NCBI RefSeq assembly: GCF_039654945.1
Contig: NW_027361731.1
Coordinates: 25,420,001 to 25,484,000 of the forward strand
Length of the DNA stretch: 64,000 nt
Source: Dendrobates tinctorius
Lineage: Eukaryota
Direction: 5' to 3'
The notes under the pieces were generated by a model. The model was not told the origin of the DNA. It saw nothing but the letters and a program-made list of their open reading frames with translations, and did no database searches. The translations under genes were made by a program, and so were the position numbers. Positions 7,400 to 29,842 of this stretch are shown here, one piece after another (within the stretch, counting starts at the first letter, position 1; the number at the start of each line of letters is the position of its first letter).

Positions 7400-10300
7400 G
7401 ACAGTATTATAAAAGTTATATTCTTGTACACAGGGGAGTAGTATTATAAAAGTTATATTCTTGTACACAGGGGAGCAGTATTATACGAAGGTATATTCTT
7501 GTACATAGGAGCAGTATTATAGTAGTTATATTCTTGTACATAGTGGGCAGTATTATAGTAGATATATTCTTGTACATAGGGACAGTATTATAGTAGTTAT
7601 ATTCTTGTACATAATAATAATAATAATAATAATATTTATTTTTTTTATATAGTGCTAACATATTCCGCAGCGCTTTACAGTTTGCACACATTATCATCAC
7701 TGTCCCCGATGAGGCTCACAATCTAAATTCCCTATCAGTATGTCTTTAGAGTGTGGGAGGAAACCGGAGCACCCGGAGGAAACCCACGCAGACACGGGGA
7801 GAACATACAAACTCCTTGCAGATGTTGTCCTTGGTGGGATTCGAACCCAGGACCCCAGCGCTGCAAGGCTGCAGTGGTAACCACTGAGCCACCGTGCTGC
7901 CCCGTAGGGGGCAGTATTATAGTAGTTATATTCTTGTACATAGGGGGAGTATTATAGTAGTTATATTCTTGTACATAGGAGCAGTATTATAGTAGTTATA
8001 TTCTTGTACATAGGGGGCAGTATTATAGTAGATATATTCTTGTACATATGGGCAGTATTATAGTAGTTATATTCTTGTACATAGGAGCAGTATTATAGTA
8101 GTTATATTCTTGTACATAGGGGCAGTATTATAGTAGTTATATTCTTGTATATAGGAGCAGTATTATAGTAGTTATATTCTTGTACATAGGGACAGTATTA
8201 TAGTAGTTATATTCTTGTACATAGGGGCAGTATTATAGTAGTTATATTCTTGTACATAGGAGCAGTATTATAGTAGTTATATTCTTGTACATAGGGGGCA
8301 GTATTATAGTAGATATATTCTTGTACATATGGGCAGTATTATAGTAGTTATATTCTTGTACATAGGAGCAGTATTATAGTAGTTATATTCTTGTACATAG
8401 GGGCAGTATTATAGTAGTTATATTCTTCTATATAGGAGCAGTATTATAGTAGTTATATTCTTGTACATTGGGACAGTATTATAGTAGTTATATTCTTGTA
8501 CATAGGGGCAGTATTATAGTAGTTATATTCTTGTACATAGGAGCAGTATTATAGTAGTTATATTCTTGTACATAGGGGGCAGTATTATAGTAGATATATT
8601 CTTGTACATATGGGCAGTATTATAGTAGTTATATTCTTGTACATAGGAGCAGTATTATAGTAGTTATATTCTTGTACATAGGGGCAGTATTATAGTAGTT
8701 ATATTCTTGTATATAGGAGCAGTATTATAGTAGTTATATTCTTGTACATAGGGACAGTATTATAGTAGTTATATTCTTGTACATAGGAGCAGTATTATAG
8801 TAGTTATATTCTTGTACATAGGGGGCAGTATTATAGTAGATATATTCTTGTACATAGGGACAGTATTATAGTAGTTATATTCTTGTACATAGGAGCAGTA
8901 TTATAGTAGTTATATTCTTGTACATAGGGGCAGTATTATAGTAGTTATATTCTTGTATATAGGAGCAGTATTATAGTAGTTATATTCTTGTACATAGGGA
9001 CAGTATTATAGTAGTTATATTCTTGTACATAGGAGCAGTATTATAGTAGTTATATTCTTGTACATAGGGGGCAGTATTATATTCTTGTACATATGGGCAG
9101 TATTATAGTAGTTATATTCTTGTACATAGGAGCAGTATTATAGTAGTTATATTCTTGTACATAGGGGCAGTATTATAGTAGTTATATTCTTGTATATAGG
9201 AGCAGTATTATAGTAGTTATATTCTTGTACATAGGGACAGTATTATAGTAGTTATATTCTTGTACATAGGGGCAGTATTATAGTAGTTATATTCTTGTAC
9301 ATAGGAGCAGTATTATAGTAGTTATATTCTTGTACATAGGGGGCAGTATTATAGTAGATATATTCTTGTACATATGGGCAGTATTATAGTAGTTATATTC
9401 TTGTACATAGGAGCAGTATTATAGTAGTTATATTCTTGTACATAGGGGCAGTATTATAGTAGTTATATTCTTGTATATAGGAGCAGTATTATAGTAGTTA
9501 TATTCTTGTACATAGGGACAGTATTATAGTAGTTATATTCTTGTACATAGGAGCAGTATTATAGTAGTTATATTCTTGTACATAGGGGGCAGTATTATAG
9601 TAGATATATTCATGTACATAGGGACAGTATTATAGTAGTTATATTCTTGTACATAGGAGCAGTATTATAGTAGTTATATTCTTGTACATAGGGGCAGTAT
9701 TATAGTAGTTATATTCTTGTATATAGGAGCAGTATTATAGTAGTTATATTCTTGTACATAGGGACAGTATTATAGTAGTTATATTCTTGTACATAGGAGC
9801 AGTATTATAGTAGTTATATTCTTGTACATAGGGGGCAGTATTATAGTAGATATATTCTTGTACATATGGGCAGTATTATAGTAGTTATATTCTTGTACAT
9901 AGGAGCAGTATTATAGTAGTTATATTCTTGTACATAGGGGCAGTATTATAGTAGTTATATTCTTGTATATAGGAGCAGTATTATAGTAGTTATATTCTTG
10001 TACATAGGGACAGTATTATAGTAGTTATATTCTTGTACATAGGGGCAGTATTATAGTAGTTATATTCTTGTACATAGGAGCAGTATTATAGTAGTTATAT
10101 TCTTGTACATAGGGGGCAGTATTATAGTAGATATATTCTTGTACATATGGGCAGTATTATAGTAGTTATATTCTTGTACATAGGAGCAGTATTATAGTAG
10201 TTATATTCTTGTACATAGGGGCAGTATTATAGTAGTTATATTCTTGTATATAGGAGCAGTATTATAGTAGTTATATTCTTGTACATTGGGACAGTATTAT

Positions 10301-13300
10301 AGTAGTTATATTCTTGTACATAGGGGCAGTATTATAGTAGTTATATTCTTGTACATAGGAGCAGTATTATAGTAGTTATATTCTTGTACATAGGGGGCAG
10401 TATTATAGTAGATATATTCTTGTACATATGGGCAGTATTATAGTAGTTATATTCTTGTACATAGGAGCAGTATTATAGTAGTTATATTCTTGTACATAGG
10501 GGCAGTATTATAGTAGTTATATTCTTGTATATAGGAGCAGTATTATAGTAGTTATATTCTTGTACATAGGGACAGTATTATAGTAGTTATATTCTTGTAC
10601 ATAGGAGCAGTATTATAGTAGTTATATTCTTGTACATAGGGGGCAGTATTATAGTAGATATATTCTTGTACATAGGGACAGTATTATAGTAGTTATATTC
10701 TTGTACATAGGAGCAGTATTATAGTAGTTATATTCTTGTACATAGGGGCAGTATTATAGTAGTTATATTCTTGTATATAGGAGCAGTATTATAGTAGTTA
10801 TATTCTTGTACATAGGGACAGTATTATAGTAGTTATATTCTTGTACATAGGAGCAGTATTATAGTAGTTATATTCTTGTACATAGGGGGCAGTATTATAT
10901 TCTTGTACATATGGGCAGTATTATAGTAGTTATATTCTTGTACATAGGAGCAGTATTATAGTAGTTATATTCTTGTACATAGGGGCAGTATTATAGTAGT
11001 TATATTCTTGTATATAGGAGCAGTATTATAGTAGTTATATTCTTGTACATAGGGACAGTATTATAGTAGTTATATTCTTGTACATAGGGGCAGTATTATA
11101 GTAGTTATATTCTTGTACATAGGAGCAGTATTATAGTAGTTATATTCTTGTACATAGGGGGCAGTATTATAGTAGATATATTCTTGTACATATGGGCAGT
11201 ATTATAGTAGTTATATTCTTGTACATAGGAGCAGTATTATAGTAGTTATATTCTTGTACATAGGGGCAGTATTATAGTAGTTATATTCTTGTATATAGGA
11301 GCAGTATTATAGTAGTTATATTCTTGTACATAGGGACAGTATTATAGTAGTTATATTCTTGTACATAGGAGCAGTATTATAGTAGTTATATTCTTGTACA
11401 TAGGGGGCAGTATTATAGTAGATATATTCATGTACATAGGGACAGTATTATAGTAGTTATATTCTTGTACATAGGAGCAGTATTATAGTAGTTATATTCT
11501 TGTACATAGGGGCAGTATTATAGTAGTTATATTCTTGTATATAGGAGCAGTATTATAGTAGTTATATTCTTGTACATAGGGACAGTATTATAGTAGTTAT
11601 ATTCTTGTACATAGGAGCAGTATTATAGTAGTTATATTCTTGTACATAGGGGGCAGTATTATAGTAGATATATTCTTGTACATAGGGACAGTATTATAGT
11701 AGTTATATTCTTGTACATAGGGAGCAGTATTATAGTAGTTATATACTTGTACATAGGAGCAGTATTATAGTAGTTATATTCTTGTACATAGGGGCAGTAT
11801 TATAGTAGTTATATTCTTGTATATAGGAGCAGTATTATAGTAGTTATATTCTTGTACATTGGGACAGTATTATAGTAGTTATATTCTTGTACATAGGGGC
11901 AGTATTATAGTAGTTATATTCTTGTACATAGGAGCAGTATTATAGTAGTTATATTCTTGTACATAGGGGCAGTATTATAGTAGTTATATTCTTGTATATA
12001 GGAGCAGTATTATAGTAGTTATATTCTTGTACATAGGAGCAGTATTATAGTAGTTATATTCTTGTACATATGGGCAGTATTATAGTAGTTATATTCTTGT
12101 ACATAGGAGCAGTATTATAGTAGTTATATTCTTGTACATAGGGGCAGTATTATAGTAGTTATATTCTTGTATATAGGAGCAGTATTATAGTAGTTATATT
12201 CTTGTACATAGGGACAGTATTATAGTAGTTATATTCTTGTACATAGGAGCAGTATTATAGTAGTTATATTCTTGTACATAGGGGGCAGTATTATAGTAGA
12301 TATATTCTTGTACATAGGGACAGTATTATAGTAGTTATATTCTTGTACATAGGAGCAGTATTATAGTAGTTATATTCTTGTACATAGGGGCAGTATTATA
12401 GTAGTTATATTCTTGTATATAGGAGCAGTATTATAGTAGTTATATTCTTGTACATAGGGACAGTATTATAGTAGTTATATTCTTGTACATAGGAGCAGTA
12501 TTATAGTAGTTATATTCTTGTACATAGGGGGCAGTATTATATTCTTGTACATATGGGCAGTATTATAGTAGTTATATTCTTGTACATAGGAGCAGTATTA
12601 TAGTAGTTATATTCTTGTACATAGGGGCAGTATTATAGTAGTTATATTCTTGTATATAGGAGCAGTATTATAGTAGTTATATTCTTGTACATAGGGACAG
12701 TATTATAGTAGTTATATTCTTGTACATAGGGGCAGTATTATAGTAGTTATATTCTTGTACATAGGAGCAGTATTATAGTAGTTATATTCTTGTACATAGG
12801 GGGCAGTATTATAGTAGATATATTCTTGTACATATGGGCAGTATTATAGTAGTTATATTCTTGTACATAGGAGCAGTATTATAGTAGTTATATTCTTGTA
12901 CATAGGGGCAGTATTATAGTAGTTATATTCTTGTATATAGGAGCAGTATTATAGCAGTTATATTCTTGTACATAGGGACAGTATTATAGTAGTTATATTC
13001 TTGTACATAGGAGCAGTATTATAGTAGTTATATTCTTGTACATAGGGGGCAGTATTATAGTAGATATATTCATGTACATAGGGACAGTATTATAGTAGTT
13101 ATATTCTTGTACATAGGAGCAGTATTATAGTAGTTATATTCTTGTACATAGGGGCAGTATTATAGTAGTTATATTCTTGTATATAGGAGCAGTATTATAG
13201 TAGTTATATTCTTGTACATAGGGACAGTATTATAGTAGTTATATTCTTGTACATAGGAGCAGTATTATAGTAGTTATATTCTTGTACATAGGGGGCAGTA

Positions 13301-15921
13301 TTATAGTAGATATATTCTTGTACATAGGGACAGTATTATAGTAGTTATATTCTTGTACATAGGGAGCAGTATTATAGTAGTTATATACTTGTACATAGGA
13401 GCAGTATTATAGTAGTTATATTCTTGTACATAGGGGGCAGTATTATATTCTTGTACATATGGGCAGTATTATAGTAGTTATATTCTTGTACATAGGAGCA
13501 GTATTATAGTAGTTATATTCTTGTACATAGGGGGCAGTATTATAGTAGATATATTCTTGTACATAGGGACAGTATTATAGTAGTTATATTCTTGTACATA
13601 GGGAGCAGTATTATAGTAGTTATATACTTGTACATAGGAGCAGTATTATAGTAGTTATATTCTTGTACATAGGGGCAGTATTATAGTAGTTATATTCTTG
13701 TATATAGGAGCAGTATTATAGTAGTTATATTCTTGTACATTGGGACAGTATTATAGTAGTTATATTCTTGTACATAGGGGCAGTATTATAGTAGTTATAT
13801 TCTTGTACATAGGAGCAGTATTATAGTAGTTATATTCTTGTACATAGGGGGCAGTATTATAGTAGATATATTCTTGTACATATGGGCAGTATTATAGTAG
13901 TTATATTCTTGTACATAGGAGCAGTATTATAGTAGTTATATTCTTGTACATAGGGGCAGTATTATAGTAGTTATATTCTTGTATATAGGAGCAGTATTAT
14001 AGTAGTTATATTCTTGTACATAGGGACAGTATTATAGTAGTTATATTCTTGTACATAGGAGCAGTATTATAGTAGTTATATTCTTGTACATAGGGGGCAG
14101 TATTATAGTAGATATATTCTTGTACATAGGGACAGTATTATAGTAGTTATATTCTTGTACATAGGAGCAGTATTATAGTAGTTATATTCTTGTACATAGG
14201 GGCAGTATTATAGTAGTTATATTCTTGTATATAGGAGCAGTATTATAGTAGTTATATTCTTGTACATAGGGACAGTATTATAGTAGTTATATTCTTGTAC
14301 ATAGGAGCAGTATTATAGTAGTTATATTCTTGTACATAGGGGGCAGTATTATATTCTTGTACATATGGGCAGTATTATAGTAGTTATATTCTTGTACATA
14401 GGAGCAGTATTATAGTAGTTATATTCTTGTACATAGGGGCAGTATTATAGTAGTTATATTCTTGTATATAGGAGCAGTATTATAGTAGTTATATTCTTGT
14501 ACATAGGGACAGTATTATAGTAGTTATATTCTTGTACATAGGGGCAGTATTATAGTAGTTATATTCTTGTACATAGGAGCAGTATTATAGTAGTTATATT
14601 CTTGTACATAGGGGGCAGTATTATAGTAGATATATTCTTGTACATATGGGCAGTATTATAGTAGTTATATTCTTGTACATAGGAGCAGTATTATAGTAGT
14701 TATATTCTTGTACATAGGGGCAGTATTATAGTAGTTATATTCTTGTATATAGGAGCAGTATTATAGTAGTTATATTCTTGTACATAGGGACAGTATTATA
14801 GTAGTTATATTCTTGTACATAGGAGCAGTATTATAGTAGTTATATTCTTGTACATAGGGGGCAGTATTATAGTAGATATATTCATGTACATAGGGACAGT
14901 ATTATAGTAGTTATATTCTTGTACATAGGAGCAGTATTATAGTAGTTATATTCTTGTACATAGGGGCAGTATTATAGTAGTTATATTCTTGTATATAGGA
15001 GCAGTATTATAGTAGTTATATTCTTGTACATAGGGACAGTATTATAGTAGTTATATTCTTGTACATAGGAGCAGTATTATAGTAGTTATATTCTTGTACA
15101 TAGGGGGCAGTATTATAGTAGATATATTCTTGTACATAGGGACAGTATTATAGTAGTTATATTCTTGTACATAGGGAGCAGTATTATAGTAGTTATATAC
15201 TTGTACATAGGAGCAGTATTATAGTAGTTATATTCTTGTACATAGGGGGCAGTATTATAGTAGTTATATTCTTGTACATAGGGGCAGTATTATAGTAGTT
15301 ATATTCTTGTACATAGGGACAGTATTATAGTAGTTATATTCTTGTACATAGGGGGCAGTATTATAGTAGTTATATTCTTGTACATAGGGGGCAGTATTAT
15401 AGTAGTTATATTCTTGTACATAGGGGGCAGTATTATAGTAGTTATATTCTTGTACATAGGGACAGTATTATAGTAGTTATATTCTTGTACATAGGGGGCA
15501 GTATTATAGTAGTTATACTCTTGTACATAGGGGCAGTATTATAGTAGTTATATTCTTGTACATAAGGGGCAGTATTATAGTAGTTATATTCTTGTACATA
15601 GGAGCAGTATTATAGTAGTTATATTCTTGTACATAGGGGACAGTATTATAGTAGTTATATTCTTGTACATAGGGGCAGTATTATAGTAGTTTCTTGTACA
15701 TAGGGAGCAGTATTATAGTAGTTATATTCTTGTACATAGGGGGCAGTATTATAGTAGTTATATTCTTGTACATAGGGGCAGTATTATAGTAGTTATATTC
15801 TTGTACATAGGGGCAGTACTATAGCAGTTATATTCTTGTACATAGGGAGCAGTATTATAGTAGTTATATTCTTGTACATAGGGGCAGTATTATAGTAGTT
15901 ATATTCTTGTACATAGGGGCA
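7400..15921. repeat. ~8.5-kb array of the 35/36-bp minisatellite with higher-order structure
   Basis: More than 200 tandem units; a SINE interrupts at 7614-7902. Confidence 0.97.
7614..7902 (-). mobile_element. tRNA-derived SINE, same family as 1111-1378
   Basis: Reverse complement closely matches the first copy; A/B boxes; (ATT)n tail; inserted at the CATA position of a satellite unit. Confidence 0.9.
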
Positions 15922-16110
15922 ATTTTTATTATAAACCAAACATAAATACAATTATAGTTAAACAAAAATCATCCAGTATTACAAAACACAAACCACTTAG
16001 GTAATATATACGCAGCACTACATAATCAGATCATATTCATAAATAAATTAAAGTATCCACACCTGGCGATGGAAAAAGTTAGAGAAAAAAAAAAAAAATA
16101 TCATATTTTT

Positions 16111-19100: not shown

Positions 19101-19514
19101 CTGGATCCTGTCAGTCACTGTCTGTGGCCCATAGATGTTAATAACCCGGAGTCGCCTCCCATGGATAGTGACTTCTAGGACCAGACATGTTCCCATGACC
19201 ACCTCCGTCATCCTATGCACAGTCACATCATTGGTGTTAAACAGGACAGCGACCCCGGGATAAGGCTCCACAGCCAGTGACCAGAAAGAAGGACCGGACC
19301 GCCATTCCCTCTCAGCCTCTCTCATAAGCCCCAGAGATGTCAGTCGTGTCTCCTGCAGGAAGATGACATCGGTGTCCAGATATTTGAGATGTTCATACAC
19401 CGCGTGTCTAGTTCTCCTCAGCTTAATGCTATTCACATTGCTCGAGGTCACTGTCAATGAGAACCCCGCCATCACAACACAATATAGTAGGAGCAAAGTA
19501 ACAGCCATCATCAT
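16111..19514 (-). pseudogene. Tx1 ORF2 (AP endonuclease plus reverse transcriptase) with one frameshift near 18405
   Basis: APE motifs NVN, LQET, GDFN, RIDF, SDH (18327..19514); RT motifs GVRQGCPMSP and YADD plus CPLGC..H..C (16111..18372); adding one G joins the frames as SLGAPDPFENCRERVAKKM. Confidence 0.88.
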
Positions 19515-21657
19515 GAGTCAGAGATGTTCTGTCCACCACTGGTGTCCATGTCAGACTCTACCTGAGGGTCCACAGATAAGGGCTTCCGCTTTGGCGGGGG
19601 ATGGTCCTCTATGTCCCTGTCACACTCAGCATCAACTTTCCTCAACTCTTCCTCATAATCGTCACCATTGGAGTCAGATAAAACTCCATACTTGTTGGAC
19701 ACGACCATCACTCCTGCAGAATTCTGAACCTTCTTACTAGCAATCTGACCAGTGTCATATTCTGCCTCAGGTTTACGGGAGGATGTGTTCTTTTTCTTCC
19801 TTTTATTATAATTAATGCTCCAGTCATCAGATACAGACAGTGATACTGAAGGGGGGGCTATCTGAGGCTGCTGGACCTGATGGACGACCTCCATGTTCCC
19901 CTCTGCACCCTGCTTCTCTGGTGCTGCCTGAGTGGACTCCTGGTGGGCATCTGAGTTGGTCAACATCTCTCCTGACATTAAATACTCCTCATGCGTCCCT
20001 GCCACATCTTCATCCTCCTGAGCCTCTGCCCCTGCCATCATTAACTCATCAGGGAAGACTCTGCAGATGTTGTGCCAGGCGTCTGGACAGTCCCTGTGAG
20101 GGTGGCCCATCCTACCACAGAGGTTGCACCTGACGTCCCGGCAGTCTGCAGCGACATGGCCGATTGCCCCACACAGACTGCACTTCACCACAGTACAGGC
20201 GTTAGCCAGATGACCTTTCCCACCACATCTGAAACACTTTCTGGGTTGCCCGGGATAATAACACCTTCCCTTCTCCCTCCCAATGAAGAAGGAGTTGGGT
20301 AAGTGGTCAGTGATGTTATCACATTGCCGCAATTTTACCAAGACCCGCCATCCCATTGTCCAGATACCATCCTCATCTCTGACCTTGGTGAGCCCAGAGA
20401 CGAGGTCACAGTGTCTCCGGAGCCACACCTCGATGTCCTGTGGAGGAACGGCCTCATTCCAGAAGGTGATGTTTACTGTGACAGTATCCAGCCTGGAGAT
20501 AGGAACCAACACAAACTTATTCCAGCCCTCAGCATCTCTGAACTTGGGGTAATTGGCCCAGAATCTATCCAGGTCAGACATGAGCTTGAAGCTGACCTCG
20601 TAGCCCTGTCTGTCCTGAAGATTAGACACTGCCAGTATCTCATTTGCCACAAACCCCATCTGGCCGCAGAGCAGCTCTCTCACCACATACCTGCGTTGTG
20701 GCAGATCCTCCTTGGCACCTATGTATTTAAACCGCACCACATTAATGCGTTTGAATGTCTGGCCAGTATACCTGGCACTGGAAGTGAAGGATGGGGCGCC
20801 GCGGCTCCAGGCATTCCTGGGGGGCACCTGCCGGGTCACACTGGGCTGACTGACAGGGAGAGGGCCTGCAGCAGGGGGGGCTGTCACACCTTGTGGACTA
20901 GATGGCAAAGGGGGATAATCACACATATCATGCACATTATCATGAGCAGCATCATTATTATCAGACAGTGCGACGTCCATTACAGAGTGTGAAACCCCTC
21001 CAACCCCCGACCCCATGGACACAGCATCACCAGCCACAGTCTGTGCTTCAGCCTCAGCCTCATCAGCACAAACAGTCTCACATATACTGTCCTGCTCCTG
21101 TGTGGGGCATTCTGGGACCTGTGGTGACTCTGCTGGAGTCTGCAGTGTATGCTCCTGTTCACACTCGACAGCCTCATCAGCACAAACAGTCTGACATATA
21201 CTGTCCTGCTCCTGTGTGGGGCATTCTGGGACCTGTGGTGCCTCTGCTGCAGTCTGAAGTGCATGCTCCTGTTCACACTGAGCTGCCTGCTGCTGCAGTT
21301 GTTTTCCCTCCTGGAAGCAGAAGCGGGCAGCCTGTAACACTGGCCGTGTCGGCTGCTGCGGGGTCCCGTCCTGAACATCAGGGGTCCTGGCCTCTACAGC
21401 ACAGTCCTGCTTATAGGAGGCGAACCGCTCGCGGTTCCTGTAGGTCTCTGCCAGGGGCCCCATGCTCTCCAGCACAGACTCAGTGTCCTGCACAACACTC
21501 GCCAGCTGTACACCCAGTGTGTTCAGTCTCAGGTCATACGCCTCATTACTGGCAGGATTAGTGGTCTTTAGGCTATAGATGAAGTCTACCTCCATTTGCA
21601 GCGCTTTTTTTTGCTGCTGTAACTCACCCAGTTTTCGGACAAGTCCCGGTATCTCAT
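19511..21657 (-). pseudogene. Tx1 ORF1, C-terminal part (gag-like zinc-knuckle protein)
   Basis: Knuckles CFRCGGKGHLANAC, CSLCGAIGHVAADC, CNLCGRMGHPHRDC; frame stays open upstream of the track ATG to the CR1 junction (EIPGLVRKLGELQQQKK); internal 114-bp (38-aa) duplication at ~21059-21290. Confidence 0.88.
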
Positions 21658-21740
21658 AGAATCATAGAATCATAGAATCGTAGAGTTGGAAGGGACCTCC
21701 TGGGCCATCTGGTCCAACCCCCTGCTCAAAGCAGGATTCG

Positions 21741-24510
21741 CTAAATCATCCCAGTCAGATGTCTGTCCAGCCTCTGTTTGAAGACTTCCATTGAAGGAGA
21801 ACTCACCACTTCTCGTGGCAGCCTGTTCCACTCATTGATCACTCTAACTGTCAAAAAGTTTTTTCTAATATCTAATCTGTGTCTCTTCCCATTCAGTTTC
21901 ATCCCATTGCTTCTAGTCTTTCCTTGTGCAAATGAGAATAAAGTTGATCCTTCTACAATGTGACAGCCCTTTAGATATTTGTAGACAGCTATTAAGTCTC
22001 CTCTCAGTCTTCTCTTTTGCAAACTAAACATTCCCAAATCCTGCAACCTTTCCTCATAAGACAGGGTTTGCAGACCGGTCACCATTCTGGTCGCTCTTTC
22101 TGAACTTGCTCCAGTTTGTTGATGTCTTTTTTAAAATGTGGTGCCCAAAACTGGACACAATATTCCAGATGAGGTCTGACCAAAGAGGAGTAGAGGGAAA
22201 TAATGACTTCACGTGATCTAGACTGTATGCTTCTGTTAATACATCCTAGAATTGCATTTGCCTTTTTTGCTGCTGCATCACACTGTTGACTCATATTCAG
22301 TCTGTGATCTATTAGTATACCCAAGTCTTTTTCACATGTGCTGTCACTTAGCCCTATTCCTCCCATTCTATATATGCTTTTTTCATTTTTATTGCCCAGA
22401 TGTAGTACTTTGCATTTCTCCCTGTTAAAAACCATTCTGTTAGTTGCTGCCCACTTCTCCAGTTTATTTAAATCTTTTTGAATCCTCTCTCTCTCCTCTC
22501 TAGTATTAGCTATCCCTCCTAGCTTTGTGTCATCAGCAAATTTAATCAGTTTACCCTCAATTCCTTCATCTAAATCGTTGATAAAGATGTTGAACAATAC
22601 AGGGCCCAGGACAGAGCCCTGTGGTACCCCACTTGAGACATTCTTCCAACTGGATGTGCAGCCATTTACGACCACTCTTTGGGTCCGATCACTAAGCCAG
22701 TTATGAATCCACCTAACAGTTGCCTTGTCCATTCCATACTTAGTCATTTTTTCAATAAGGATTGTATGAGAGACTTTGTCAAATGCTTTGCTGAAGTCAA
22801 GATATACTATATCTACAGCATTTCCTTGATCCACCCAATCAGTGATACCGTCATAGAAGGAAATTAAGTTAGTCTGACATGACTTATCAGTTACAAACCC
22901 ATGCTGACTCTGTTTAATCACTTCATTCTTATCCAGGTATTGACATACATGTTGTTTAATAATTTGTTCAAAGATCTTTCCTGGTATAGAAGTCAGACTC
23001 ACCGGCCTATAGTTGCCTGGGTCCACCTTCTTCCCCTTTTTGAAGATAGGAACAACATTTGCTCTTCTCCAGTCTTCTGGCACTTCTCCTGTTCTCCAAG
23101 AATTTTCAAAGATTATGGAGAGGGGTTCAAAAATTTCTTCTGCTATCTCCTTCAGTACTCTGGGGTGTAATTCATCTGGACCTGGAGACTTGAATTCATT
23201 TAGGTTAGCTAAGTGTTTCCTCACTATCTTTCTGTTTATAGATATCCTGGATTCTTCTATTCCCTTAATAGGACAGTGAATAACAGTTGATGTTGCATTT
23301 CCTTTCTGAGAGAAAACAGATGCAAAATAGGAATTTAAAAGTTCAGCCTTCTCAACATCCTGTCTTACCATTTCATCATTTTCATCCTGTAAAAATATTA
23401 TAGCATCTTTGACTTTTCTTTTACTTTTGACATATCCCCAAAATCCTTTATTATTGCTTTTGACATCTCTTGCAAGCCTCAGTTCATTTTCAGCTTTAGA
23501 TAATCTGATTTGTGCCCTGCAGGTTCTGCAGACAGCATTATATTCTTCTTTAGATATGCCTCCCTCTTTCCATTTTATAAACATTTTTTTCTTCCTTTTT
23601 AGCATGTGCTTAAGTTCTGTGTTCATCCATCCTGGTTTCCTTAAATGCTTCCTATTCTTCCCTCTTTTCGGAATTGTTAACAACTGTGCATTGAGAATTT
23701 CATTTTTCAAGATTTCCCATCCTTCCTGGACATTTTTGTCTTTAAGGATATCCAGCCATTGGATCCCTCTAATTCTCTTTCTGAATCCCTTAAAATCTGC
23801 CTCTCTGAAATCTAACCTTGACGTCTGAGTCTTCACAGGTCTTCCACCTCTAGTTATCCAAAATTCTAAAATAGCATGGTCGCTACCTCCTAGGGTCCCA
23901 GCCACTTTTACCTCCTCAACCATTTCCTCCCTGTTTATAAGGATTAGATCCAAGGTAGCAGTTCCCCTTGTTTTCTCCCTTACCTTTTGGAAGATAAAGT
24001 TGTCAGCAAGAGAGGATAAGAATTTCCTTGACCTGTTAGTTTTGCCTGAGAGAGATTCCCAACAAATGTCTGGATAGTTGAAATCTCCCATGACAACCAT
24101 GTCATATTTTTTGGAGAACTTGGCCATCTGATGCATAAAGAGTTCATCTATATCTTCGGCTTGCACAGGCGGCCTGTAGTAAATGCCTACAATGGTGTCC
24201 TTTCCATTGTTCTGTCCTTGTATTCTTACCCAAACAGTTTCCACAGAACTCCCAGTCTCTGAAGCTTCAATCTCTGTGCAGATATACGCGTTTCGAACAT
24301 ACAATGCGACACCCCCTCCTCGTTTATCAAGTCTGTTTCTTGCAAATAAGTTGTATCCTTCTAGTCTTGTATTCCAATCATGTGTATTGTCCCACCAAGT
24401 TTCAGTGATTCCAATGACATCATATTTCTTTTCCTGTGTTAGTAGTTCCAATTCTCCTTGTTTGTTGCCCATGCTTTGTGCATTAGTATAGAAACATTTT
24501 AGTTTGTGAT
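21741..24510 (-). pseudogene. CR1 ORF2 (endonuclease/RT) with one frameshift near 22098
   Basis: [36 protein letters not shown]; QKERPEW* becomes QRRATRMV with one added base, joining ORF 21741..22085; true start not determined. Confidence 0.88.
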
Positions 24511-24651
24511 TGGTTTCTCTTTCTCCAATATTTTTATTAATTAGATTCTTTCGTCTTTGTTCTTCCTTTCCACTTCTAATAGCAGAGTTCTCAATAGCAT
24601 TTGTCAGGTGTATGGCTTTTTCTGGTCTTTTGCTTCCCTTCCCATGTTGTT

Positions 24652-25614
24652 CTAGTTTAAAGCTCTCCTTACAAGTGTAGCAAGGCGACTTCCAAATACA
24701 TGCTTTCCAGTCTTCGTAAGGTGCACCCCATCTCTAGCAAGTAGTCCATCGTATAAGTAGTTCACTCCGTGAACCAGAAATCCAAATCGTTGCTGACGGC
24801 ACCGTCGACGTAGCCATTTGTTCACCTGCAGAATCTTATTCGACCTCCTTGTTCCATGGCCATCCACTGGGAGGATGGAAGAGAAGACCACCTGCGCTCC
24901 CAGTTCTTTCACTTTCTTGCCTAAGTCTTCAAAGTCTCTGCAGATGGTTTCCAGGTCGTTTCTTGCGGTGTCATTTGTCCCCACATGTAGTAGCAGGAAT
25001 GGGTAGTCATCTGTAGGTCTGAAGAGTCCTGATATCCTGTCAGACACATCTTTAATTTTTGCACCTGGAAGACAGCACATTTCTCTTGTAGTTATATCCG
25101 GTCTGCAGATAGCGGCCTCTGTTCCTCTCAGCAGGGAATCCCCCATGACCACCACTCTCCGTTTCTTCTTCACAACATTTTTCTTTCTCCATCCAGGAGG
25201 ACTCTGAGGGCGTACAAGGTTGCTGTTTGTTGGCAAAGTCTTATCCTGATGTATTTCTTCATCGTTTTCCTGCGTGAGAGCCTGGTACTGGTTTCTGAGC
25301 AGTATGGGTGCTGACTGCCTCCTGATCCTCCTGCTTCTCTGGGTCACATGTCTCCATTCCTCTGTTTCTTCAGGTGCACTTCGAATTTCTTCTCTTTCTG
25401 TAACATGAAGAGATAATTATGCTCTGTCCAAGAACTCTTCACCTTCCTTAATGATCTTCAACGTAGCTAACCTCTCTTCGAGATTTTGCAACTTTTCCTC
25501 CAACAGGGACACAAGCTTGCATTTGTGGCATGTGAAGTTTGGCTTTTCCACTGGTAAATCTGTGAACATGTAGCAAGAAATGCAGCTCACCAAATGGCTC
25601 CTGGCCTCTTCCAT
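24652..25614 (-). pseudogene. CR1 ORF1 (CxxC..CxxC finger, coiled coil, SGNH/GDSL esterase-like) with one in-frame stop at 25417-25419
   Basis: SCISC...CHKC; GDSLLR, HVGTND and DGVHL blocks; the two track ORFs share one frame. Confidence 0.85.
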
Positions 25615-25658
25615 CTTGAGATTTCTTAAAAACGATGAAAGATGAGCCAAATTTCGGT

Positions 25659-26036
25659 TTTTCCGATTTCCTCTTTTCAGCTGCAACGGCCAAAACCCAG
25701 TGATCGTTGAGCTCGCGGAGACTCTTCACTTATCCCAGAAGGCACTGGGAATATGCAAATGATCTCCTCAAGACTCTTCCCCTGGTTTTCCGATTTCCTC
25801 TTTTCAGCTGCAACGGCCAAAACCCAGTGATCGTTGAGCTCGCGGAGACTCTTCACTTATCCCAGAAGGCACTGGGAATATGCAAATGATCTCAAGACTC
25901 TTCCCCTGGTTTTCCGATTTCCTCTTTTCAGCTGCAACGGCCAAAACCCAGTGATCGTTGAGCTCGCGGAGACTCTTCACTTATCCCAGAAGGCACTGGG
26001 AATATGCAAATGATCTCCTCAAGACTCTTCCCCTGG
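25659..26036. promoter_or_regulatory. Three tandem 124-127-bp monomers at the CR1 5' end, each with a Staf/ZNF143-like site and an octamer
   Basis: Units 25659-25785, 25786-25909, 25910-26036; each has ATCCCAGAAGGCACTGGG then AAT then ATGCAAAT. The repeat is certain; the regulatory role is inferred. Confidence 0.6.
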
Positions 26037-26037
26037 T

Positions 26038-26665
26038 TCATCCGCTAGCTGCAGCTCGGGTGCACGCGCCGGCCCCACAGGCTTAGTCTTGACCACGGGT
26101 ACAGGGGTTTTGAAGACAGTCTTGTGCGGGTCCACCACGGATGGTTTTGTGGCCCCTTGGCTGGATGCAGGCTCCGCAGCAGGTTTATCGCTGCCACCTG
26201 TGACCGTGTGCGTCCTGACCGCGCCATACTGCCATGTTGCTGTATGTTCTCCTGCATTGTTTGTCTTTCCAAAGACGTCCGTCTCTGCCTGGAAGCAGCA
26301 GAGGTGATCTGCACAGCTGGGGCCGATCTCACCTGTGCACCTGGCAGGAGCTGCTTACTGACTGGGGAGCTACAAGACTTCACACTCTGCTGGATTCCAT
26401 CACTCACTGACACTTTTCCTTCTTGCTTCTTTGCTGGAACTGGAGAAGGTTTTCCTCCCAAAACTTTAGTCAAAGCTTTCTCCTCCTTCACCGAACTGCT
26501 GCAGCTTTGGCTCGCTGCATTCACTGGTCTCACAGTGGCTTTGGGATTAACATTCCCATTAGTAGAAGCCTGGGAGGCTAGTCCCAGTGTAGGCCGGGAA
26601 GCCTGGGCCTTGCCAGGGGAGCTTCCCCGCCCAGGGTGGCCCCTCCCTGGGCTTGCTCCAGACAT
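26038..26665 (-). pseudogene. Tx1 ORF1, N-terminal low-complexity part, with one frameshift between ~26050 and ~26350
   Basis: ATG at 26665 (MSGASPG...); an alternative frame ending ...PARAPELQLADE joins the downstream ORF1 across the CR1 insertion. Confidence 0.7.
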
Positions 26666-26696
26666 CAGGAGAACCACTGACACACAACCTCACAGC

Positions 26697-27833
26697 TAGG
26701 AGGCAGTATTATAGTAGTTATATTCTTGTACATAGGAGCAGTATTATAGTAGTTATATTCTTGCACATAGGAGCAGTATTATAGTAGTTATATTCTTGTA
26801 CATAGGGGGCAGTATTATAGTAGTTATATTCTTGTACATAGGGGGCAGTATTATAGTAGTTATATTCTTGTACATAGGGGCAGTATTATAGTAGTTATAT
26901 TCTTGTACATAGGGGGCAGTATTATAGTAGTTATATTCTTGTACATAGGAGCAGTATTATAGTAGTTATATTCTTGTACATAGGAGAGCAGTATTATAGT
27001 AGTTATATTCTTGTACATAGGGGGCAGTATTATAGTAGTTATATTCTTGTACATAGGAGCAGTATTATAGTAGTTATATTCTTGCACATAGGAGCAGTAT
27101 TATAGTAGTTATATTCCTGTACATAGGGGGCAGTATTATAGTAGTTATATTCTTGTACATAGGGGACAGTTTTATAGTAGTTATATTCTTGTACATAGGG
27201 AGCAGTATTATAGTAGTTATATTCTTGTACATAGGGGCAGTATTATAGTAGTTATATTCTTGTACATAGGGGGCAGTATTATAGTAGTTATATTCTTGTA
27301 CATAGGGGGCAGTATTATAGTAGTTATATTCTTGTACATAGGAGCAGTATTATAGTAGTTATATTCTTGTACATAGGGGACAGTTTTATAGTAGTTATAT
27401 TCTTGTACATAGGGAGCAGTATTATAGTAGTTATATTCTTGTACATAGGGGCAGTATTATAGTAGTTATATTCTTGTACATAGGGGGCAGTATTATAGTA
27501 GTTATATTCTTGTACATAGGAGCAGTATTATAGTAGTTATATTCTTGTACATAGGAGCAGTATTATAGTAGTTATATTCTTGTACATAGGGGCAGTATTA
27601 TAGTAGTTATATTCTTGTACATAGGGGACAGTTTTATAGTAGTTATATTCTTGTACATAGGGAGCAGTATTATAGTAGTTATATTCTTGTACATAGGGGC
27701 AGTATTATAGTAGTTATATTCTTGTACACAGGGGAGCAGTATTATACGAAGGTATATTCTTGTACATAGTAGCAGTATTATAGTAGTTATATTCTTGTAC
27801 ATAGGGGGCAGTATTATAGTAGTTATATTCTTG
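26697..27833. repeat. 35/36-bp minisatellite (far side of the Tx1)
   Basis: Same unit and orientation. Confidence 0.97.
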
Positions 27834-28915: not shown

Positions 28916-29800
28916 CACTACTAGAGGTATTCCCAGACTACAGGTGTAACTACCAGAGGTATTCCCAGACTACTGGTGTCACTATCAGAGGTATTTCAAG
29001 ACTACTGGTGTCACTACCAGAGATATTCCCCAGACTACAGGTGTCACTGCCAGAGGTATTCCCAGACTACAGGTGTCACTATAACAGGTATTCCCAAACT
29101 AAGGGTGCCACTACCAGAAGTATTCCCAGACTACATGTATCACTACCAGAGATATTCCCAGACTACAAGTGTCACTACCAGAGGTATTCCCAGGCTACTG
29201 GTGTCACTACCAGAGGTATTCCCAGACTACTGGTGTCACAACCAGAGATATTCCCAGACTACAGGTGTCACTGCCAGAGGTATTCCCAGACTACAGGTGT
29301 CACTACTAGAGGTATTCCAAGAATAATGGTGTCACTACCAGAGGTATTCCCAGAATAATGGTATCACTACCATAGATATCTCCAGACAACAGGTGTCACT
29401 ACCAGAGGTATTCCCAGACTACTGGTGTCACTACCAAAAGGTATTCCCAGACTACTGGTGTCATTACCAGTGGTATTCCAAGACTACTGGTGTCACTACT
29501 AGAGGTATTCCCAGACTACAGGTGTCACTACCAGAGTTATTCCCAGAATAATGGTGTCACTACCAGAGATATTCCTAGACTACAGGTGTCACTACCAGAA
29601 GTATTCCAAGACTACAGGTGCCACTACCAGAGGTATTCTCAGAATAATGGTGTCACTACCAGAGATATTCCCAGACTACAAGTGTCACTACAAGCAATAT
29701 TCACAGACTACCTGTGTCACTACCAGAGGTATTCCCAGAACAACGGTTTCACTACCAGAGACATTTCCAAACTACAGGTGTCACTACCAAAGACATTCCT

Positions 29801-29804
<4 letters not shown>
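28916..29804. repeat. 32-bp minisatellite (GGTGTCACTACCAGAGGTATTCCCAGACTACA)
   Basis: About 28 tandem copies. Confidence 0.95.

Positions 29805-29842
<38 letters not shown>
29805..29842. repeat. (TA)n microsatellite
   Basis: Perfect TA run. Confidence 0.97.

Follow-up and report, generated by a model that had tools for sequence, protein, structure and literature searches.

The three tandem units located at 25659-26038 of the window (the whole stretch of Dendrobates tinctorius DNA that was analyzed, 64,000 nucleotides in length) probably form a 5′ UTR built of repeats, which would also be the internal promoter, in a young and very abundant dendrobatid CR1 subfamily. We assign this reading a probability of roughly 55%. 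Each 127-bp unit appears to begin at a transcription start, (A)ACCAGGGG, and would carry, between +28 and +56, a composite activator comprised of ATTTGCAT, 4 nt, and a reversed ZNF143/Staf-type site. The repetition would also place each of these modules ∼72-100 nt upstream of the start of the next unit, so that even transcripts initiated at an inner unit would pass on one or more complete modules to the new copy, as in the case of mouse L1 monomers. We infer the binding of a POU factor and of Znf143, the use of RNA polymerase II, the position of the start site, and the promoter activity itself. The 5′ UTRs of CR1 elements are known promoters, which differ between subfamilies (PMC2734521; bioRxiv 10.64898/2026.03.19.712899).

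A CR1 element inserted into a Tx1-like LINE

The whole CR1 insertion occupies positions 21654..26037 of the minus strand (∼4.38 kb), and its limits were fixed by empty-site contigs and by the sequence at both ends. Contigs of four public runs, one of which (X17) comes from a second, related species, were aligned to the region 24400-26690. In contigs of X1, X9, and X17, the sequence from 26038 onward follows without interruption on the letters that end just left of 21654: contigs aligning rightward from 26038 are preceded by ...CAAGTCCCGGTATC, i.e. by the letters that lie left of the CR1 tail at 21653. These contigs fix the ends of the insertion and thereby show that the CR1 begins exactly with the unit array. 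TCAT stands at both edges of the insertion, at 21654-21657 and at 26038-26041, as either a microhomology or a target duplication of 4 bp. The summed contig depth, which is calculated from assembled contigs and is a measure of neither copy number nor expression, amounts to ∼5-8e5 over ORF1, 0.7-4.5e5 over the units, and 2-8e3 beyond 26038, with a ∼100-fold fall at the latter position. The subfamily is extremely abundant (8335 X1 contigs aligned); BLAST of the window against itself revealed no further copy of the CR1 or of the unit.

The element was placed in the CR1 clade on the basis of three features: (i) an ORF2 encoding an endonuclease and a reverse transcriptase, (ii) a zinc-finger/esterase ORF1, and (iii) an 8-bp repeat 3′ end. 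ORF1 (24652..25614, minus strand) is comprised of an N-terminal zinc-finger/coiled-coil part and an SGNH/GDSL esterase-like domain, the latter being detected in Pfam by weak matches to Lipase_GDSL_2 and OSK, both under the curated cutoffs. It is 97% identical to P0001, an SGNH-type protein of D. tinctorius, and is related to the CR1 ORF1 of turtle, lizard, and bird. Its only defect is a single in-frame TAA stop at 25417-25419 (minus strand); opposite 25419 the other copies carry G, so that essentially all other contigs read GAA (Glu). At the end of ORF1 (24661-24652, minus strand), a U UUA AAC slippery heptamer followed by UAG was noted. Look-ups of exact proteins returned no record for the N-terminal piece of ORF1 or for a 60-aa ORF within the array.

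ORF2 (22079..24472, minus strand) codes for an endonuclease of the apurinic type and, after it, a reverse transcriptase (Pfam Exo_endo_phos, 7e-16; RVT_1, 1e-35). Its best relatives are the CR1 ORF2 proteins of reptiles and birds, and the protein search found no near-identical D. tinctorius copies (best match 75%). The C-terminal piece of ORF2 (21741..22085, minus strand) lies in another frame, which therefore places a frameshift near 22085 in the window copy. Judged by the ORF1 stop and the ORF2 frameshift, this copy is dead but young. The 3′ UTR (21654..21740, minus strand) ends in three 8-bp GATTCTAT repeats and has no poly(A) tail. A tail of 8-bp repeats (ATTCTRTG type) in place of poly(A) has been described for CR1 (PMC2734521).

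The CR1 was inserted into the 5′ part of a Tx1-like LINE, which is not itself a CR1. This part of the host repeat lies at 26038..26696 (minus strand), as delimited by the depth drop and the empty-site contigs; the host is also found at 21595-21653 and continues to ∼15914. Its ORF1, encoding CCHC knuckles, is located at 19511-21595 and its ORF2 starts at 19514. Uninterrupted host sequence was present in contigs of three runs, the second species included. A 212-aa minus-strand ORF at 26045-26683 had no Pfam match. The host element abuts a 36-bp satellite (26697-27833), and a 32-bp tandem repeat is located at 28916-29806 (27.8 copies, 83% matches). The region between ∼8 and 16 kb (8000-16000) is a long low-GC (0.29) stretch with a strong GC skew, and is probably a satellite.

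The tandem array at the 5′ end

Tandem Repeats Finder identified the array at 25659-26038, with a period of 127, 3.0 copies, and 97% matches. Alignment of the units revealed that they are 127, 124, and 127 bp in length and that their sole difference is one 3-bp indel, units 1 and 3 being 100% identical. Unit 1, which is the 5′-most (25912..26037, minus strand), contains the start of the element, (A)ACCAGGGG. Unit 2 (25788..25911, minus strand; 124 bp) carries the 3-bp deletion, placed between the unit start and the octamer described below. Unit 3 (25661..25787, minus strand), delimited by Tandem Repeats Finder and the unit alignment, adjoins a tether of ∼45 nt (25615..25660, minus strand), which links the array to the ATG of ORF1 (25614). 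Both structural claims of the sequence-only reading were thus confirmed, the three tandem monomers of 124-127 bp by Tandem Repeats Finder and the unit alignment, and their location at the 5′ end of the CR1 by the empty-site contigs from three runs.

A monomer-type LINE promoter has the same layout, with units in head-to-tail order at the extreme 5′ end and a tether leading to ORF1. The observed/expected ratio of CpG is 0.67 in the units vs 0.27 in the element body. A search of Rfam gave no matches in the array region, in the whole window, or in the fetched loci, and therefore no known structured RNA is the source of the unit.

An independent copy of the element, with an intact ORF1, was found at the P0001-encoding locus of D. 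tinctorius (GCA_039654945.1; designated L001). Its array contains 2.3 units of 128 bp which are 100% alike, and its last unit breaks off after 44 nt, so that the joint with the tether differs from that of the window copy. The number of units therefore varies among copies (3.0 in the window, 2.3 in L001). The tandem repetition was not unique to one locus: the array, which recurs in L001 with a different number of units, is a feature of the CR1 family.

Other copies represented by contigs also have the tether joined to different unit positions, with joints at 25645-25656. At 25618, shortly before the ORF1 ATG, eleven X1 contigs switch to a different, AT-rich 5′ UTR. These variable joints and the contigs diverging near the ATG indicate that several CR1 subfamilies share their ORFs and differ in their 5′ UTRs. 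In addition, an X14 contig contains an 18-nt CpG-rich insert behind 25654.

The 5′ ends of the copies share a common register. In a census comprised of two full copies and two contig junctions, all four independent junctions (4/4) fell within 4 nt at the same point of the 127-nt unit: (i) the window copy starts at 26037, (ii) L001 starts with CAGGGG, 2 nt further in, (iii) an X14 contig is aligned to 25788, the boundary between units 2 and 3, and then continues into 232 nt of unrelated DNA, and (iv) an X17 contig is aligned to 26035 and is followed by 255 nt of unrelated DNA. If the ends were random within the unit, the chance of three further ends in one 4-nt window would be ∼3e-5. This common register fits a fixed transcription start, from which full-length copies would be made, and is indirect evidence for it.

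The octamer and ZNF143/Staf-like module

Each unit contains one copy of the 29-mer ATCCCAGAAGGCACTGGGAATATGCAAAT, in which a short spacer separates a ZNF143/Staf-like site from a perfect octamer. This sequence occurs exactly three times in the window (plus strand, at 25732, 25859, and 25983), with 0 occurrences expected in shuffles. The ZNF143/Staf-like 17-mer ATCCCAGAAGGCACTGG, with the core CCCAGAAGGCA, is located at 25732..25748 in unit 3, and the matrix described below placed its counterparts at 25859..25875 in unit 2 and at 25983..25999 in unit 1 (all plus strand). The perfect octamer ATGCAAAT was found by motif matching at 25753..25760, 25880..25887, and 26004..26011 (plus strand) in units 3, 2, and 1, respectively. 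Since the CR1 lies on the minus strand, the motif as first written stands antisense to the element. In the CR1 sense, where the octamer is ATTTGCAT, the module reads ATTTGCAT-ATTC-CCAGTGCCTTCTGGGAT, and occupies +28 to +56 of its own unit.

The ZNF143/Staf-like site was scored against a matrix tallied by hand from 29 distinct ZNF143-occupied human non-U1-type sites (Figure S10 of PMC3499247). The window site reached 17.2 of a maximum of 24.1 bits, a score that is expected at ∼2e-6 per random position and that ranks at approximately the 69th percentile when sites are drawn from the matrix itself. Of the 128,000 positions in the window, just two others score this high. Minority bases occur at positions 1, 10, and 17 of the site; the G at position 10 is shared with the U4atac and U6-9 sites, which are occupied (PMC3499247). 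The variants found in L001 and in Ranitomeya (see below) scored 14.2 and 16.1 bits, respectively. Both elements of the module named by the sequence-only reading were upheld, the octamers at identical coordinates and the Staf/ZNF143-like site with a score on this hand-tallied human matrix like that of typical occupied sites. Two GTCCCAGAATGCCCCAC sites of 17.5 bits are located at 21102-21118 and 21216-21232 (minus strand), within a 114-bp coding repeat of the Tx1-like ORF1, and no octamer was noted alongside them.

The conservation of the module was examined in copies of different origin. In L001 the 29-mer has a single change, CCCAG to CCAAG in the sense strand. A CR1 of Ranitomeya imitator (L002), with an ORF1 that is 64% identical, lacks any tandem repeat. 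Its single 5′ UTR keeps ACCAGGG, followed 18 nt on by ATTTGCATATTCC and then by GTGCTTTCTGGGAA. The octamer and its 3′ flank are kept at 13/13 positions compared to the window unit, and the ZNF143-type core TCCCAGAA-GCAC is also kept, while the remaining 5′ UTR is hardly alignable. The L002 site, TTCCCAGAAAGCAC, is the best-scoring one in its locus. The octamer and the site core are therefore conserved in a second genus. The homology of L002 begins at the same nucleotides as the 5′ ends of the window-type copies; homology upstream of ACCAGGG was rejected, as no match to the unit tail was obtained (shuffle P = 0.92).

The presence of a single-copy module in this non-tandem Ranitomeya CR1 means that the module is older than the tandem array. 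The two were thus not acquired at the same time. The footprint of the module is thin, being deduced from three sequence versions from two frog genera; the variable site positions (1, 10, 15, and 16) have a lower information content (0.60 bits) than the constant ones (0.95 bits), which in these three versions is a non-significant trend (P = 0.18). A second Ranitomeya copy (L004) is truncated 72 nt before the ATG. A metagenome contig with a 69% identical ORF1 (L003) was rejected as a carrier of the module, since its 5′ UTR is unrelated and contains no octamer, and a scan of metagenomes for the module found nothing.

A different function of the conserved block is rather unlikely, though the likeliest of the alternatives. 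The block might act as an RNA or DNA hairpin of the 5′ UTR (in translation, packaging, or ORF1 protein binding) or as an RBPJ/THAP11/STAT-type site, with the octamer read by germline POU5F3-type factors and not by Oct-1. A 6-bp palindrome, TCCCAG/CTGGGA, does overlap the site, and each of the three versions (window unit, L001, and Ranitomeya) is predicted to form a small local hairpin, the pairing register being shifted in Ranitomeya. However, whole units fold no better than shuffled sequences (z of -1.4, -0.9, and +0.1), and the left arm of the palindrome varies in L001 and Ranitomeya, whereas the arm belonging to the ZNF143 core and the GCAC are constant. The TTCCCAGAA of the Ranitomeya version fits TTCNNNGAA, a STAT-site pattern, which counts in favor of this alternative. 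The binding of RBPJ and THAP11 to the TTCCCA core of ZNF143 sites, which has been described (PMC3627581), also speaks for it. On the other side stand the strand preference of the site (4.5 bits in the sense-strand reading vs 17.2 in the antisense one) and the perfect, conserved octamer, for which there is no obvious role in RNA.

Comparison with snRNA-type genes and known LINE promoters

With a perfect octamer and a 17.2-bit site separated by a 4-nt spacer, the module has the composition of an snRNA-type enhancer. Two human genes provide the closest parallels: in RPPH1, ATTTGCAT (-97/-90) is followed after 3 nt by a reversed ZNF143 site (-86/-70), while in TRNAU1 the ZNF143 site is followed after 3 nt by ATGTAAAT (PMC3499247). 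In both of them the octamer lies directly beside the ZNF143 site, and the order, orientation, and spacing match those of the frog unit. Relative to the start of the next unit, the frog octamer is located at -100/-93 and the reversed site at -88/-72. In contrast to these genes, the frog module lies within a LINE 5′ UTR, is repeated, and would have a long coding RNA as its product.

The frog units also differ from snRNA-type genes in that no PSE or TATA box was found in them. The PSE consensus TCACCNTNASTNAAAAGK, which is mammalian and not that of frogs, had no match in the units at ≤3 mismatches, and the 40 nt preceding the unit start contain no TATA box. These results therefore lend no support to a true snRNA-type promoter, and the module would be at most a DSE-like activator. 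The proposal of the sequence-only reading that the CR1 carries an snRNA-like enhancer thus stands as far as the order, orientation, and spacing shared with RPPH1 and TRNAU1 are concerned, but does not extend to a promoter of the snRNA type. Since ordinary mRNA promoters used by RNA polymerase II are also activated by ZNF143 and Oct-1 (PMC3627581), it is economical to read the units as an internal promoter for RNA polymerase II that contains a DSE-like activator module.

It is improbable that the units are a true SNAPc-dependent promoter, captured from an H1, tRNA-Sec, or U-snRNA gene or convergent on one. Such an snRNA/H1-type unit would have its Oct and Staf sites at an RPPH1-like distance from the next start, which is indeed the distance observed, and possibly a frog-type PSE at -65 to -50; it might be a solution common to the CR1 and hammerhead retrozymes, and linked to the missing poly(A). 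The stretch GAGTCTCCGCGAGCTC is located at -65 to -50. Xenopus PSEs contain TCTCC, which would make this stretch a candidate frog-type PSE. Newt satellite 2, an amphibian repeat that is reported to be driven by an snRNA-type promoter (PMC2220036 citing Coats 1994), also speaks for an snRNA-type origin. However, this satellite and the amphibian hammerhead retrozymes are non-coding tandem repeats, whereas the element described here is an autonomous LINE, and the Rfam search revealed no snRNA or ribozyme repeat in the window or the fetched loci for comparison. Besides the missing PSE and TATA box (none near -30) and the use of ZNF143 and Oct-1 by ordinary mRNA promoters, a 4.4-kb coding RNA with T runs is unsuited to RNA polymerase III. 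If the units were nevertheless of this type, retroelements of both the autonomous and the non-autonomous kind would draw on one snRNA transcription system that is strong and active in the germline, and this might be related to the absence of a poly(A) tail from CR1 RNA.

Equally doubtful is the idea that the repetition arose as a neutral by-product, for example when the reverse transcriptase switched templates at the 5′ end of the RNA, or through slippage in replication or unequal exchange, its copy number being without effect and the promoter needing one unit or lying elsewhere: a single module suffices in Ranitomeya and the units within a copy are identical, but arrays are present in every full-length copy of the subfamily examined, the subfamily is extremely abundant, and monomer duplication in mouse L1 is reported to help maintain the promoter despite truncation-prone retrotransposition (PMC6454616).

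Returning to the putative repeat-built internal promoter, its closest known counterparts include the monomer promoters described for mouse and rat L1, smaller duplications being known from some other mammalian L1s (PMC5381506). As in these elements, the frog units are arranged head-to-tail at the very 5′ end and are separated from ORF1 by a non-repeated tether (PMC5381506), their number varies between copies, and their CpG content exceeds that of the element body. In the frog as in the rodents, the repetition could preserve a promoter through 5′ truncation (PMC6454616, PMC9022269). The differences concern the clade (L1 vs CR1), the unit length (127 bp in the frog vs ∼200 bp in the mouse and 650 bp in the rat), the unit sequences, which are unrelated, and the factors (YY1 vs, in the frog, a putative POU protein and putative ZNF143). 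Moreover, the frog copies examined start at one fixed point of the unit.

The chicken elements CR1-B, CR1-F, and CR1-H belong to the same LINE clade and have a 5′ UTR that is a promoter (PMC2734521); in chicken oocytes, the 5′ end of CR1-H is the start site (bioRxiv 10.64898/2026.03.19.712899). Their subfamilies have common ORFs and unrelated 5′ UTRs (PMC2734521), like the frog contigs that diverge above the ATG, and Oct-1 sites have been predicted in CR1-F (PMC2734521). In contrast to the frog element, neither tandem monomers nor a ZNF143-type site have been described for them (PMC2734521; bioRxiv 10.64898/2026.03.19.712899). A literature search conducted outside most subscription journals and Repbase reports found no tandem units in CR1 and no LINE promoter combining an octamer with a ZNF143 site, and both CR1 and monomers are absent from the text of the D. 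tinctorius genome paper. A promoter function of the frog units is plausible.

Monomer-built promoters are a textbook peculiarity of rodent L1. The same architecture in an amphibian CR1 would clearly exemplify convergent evolution, with 5′ truncation during retrotransposition as the shared constraint. The module would link this CR1 lineage to the activator pair of snRNA genes, and, since it is a short two-factor site conserved across genera, it makes the promoter grammar of a non-mammalian LINE directly testable. Finally, the array may help to explain the abundance of one CR1 lineage in the very large genomes of dendrobatid frogs.
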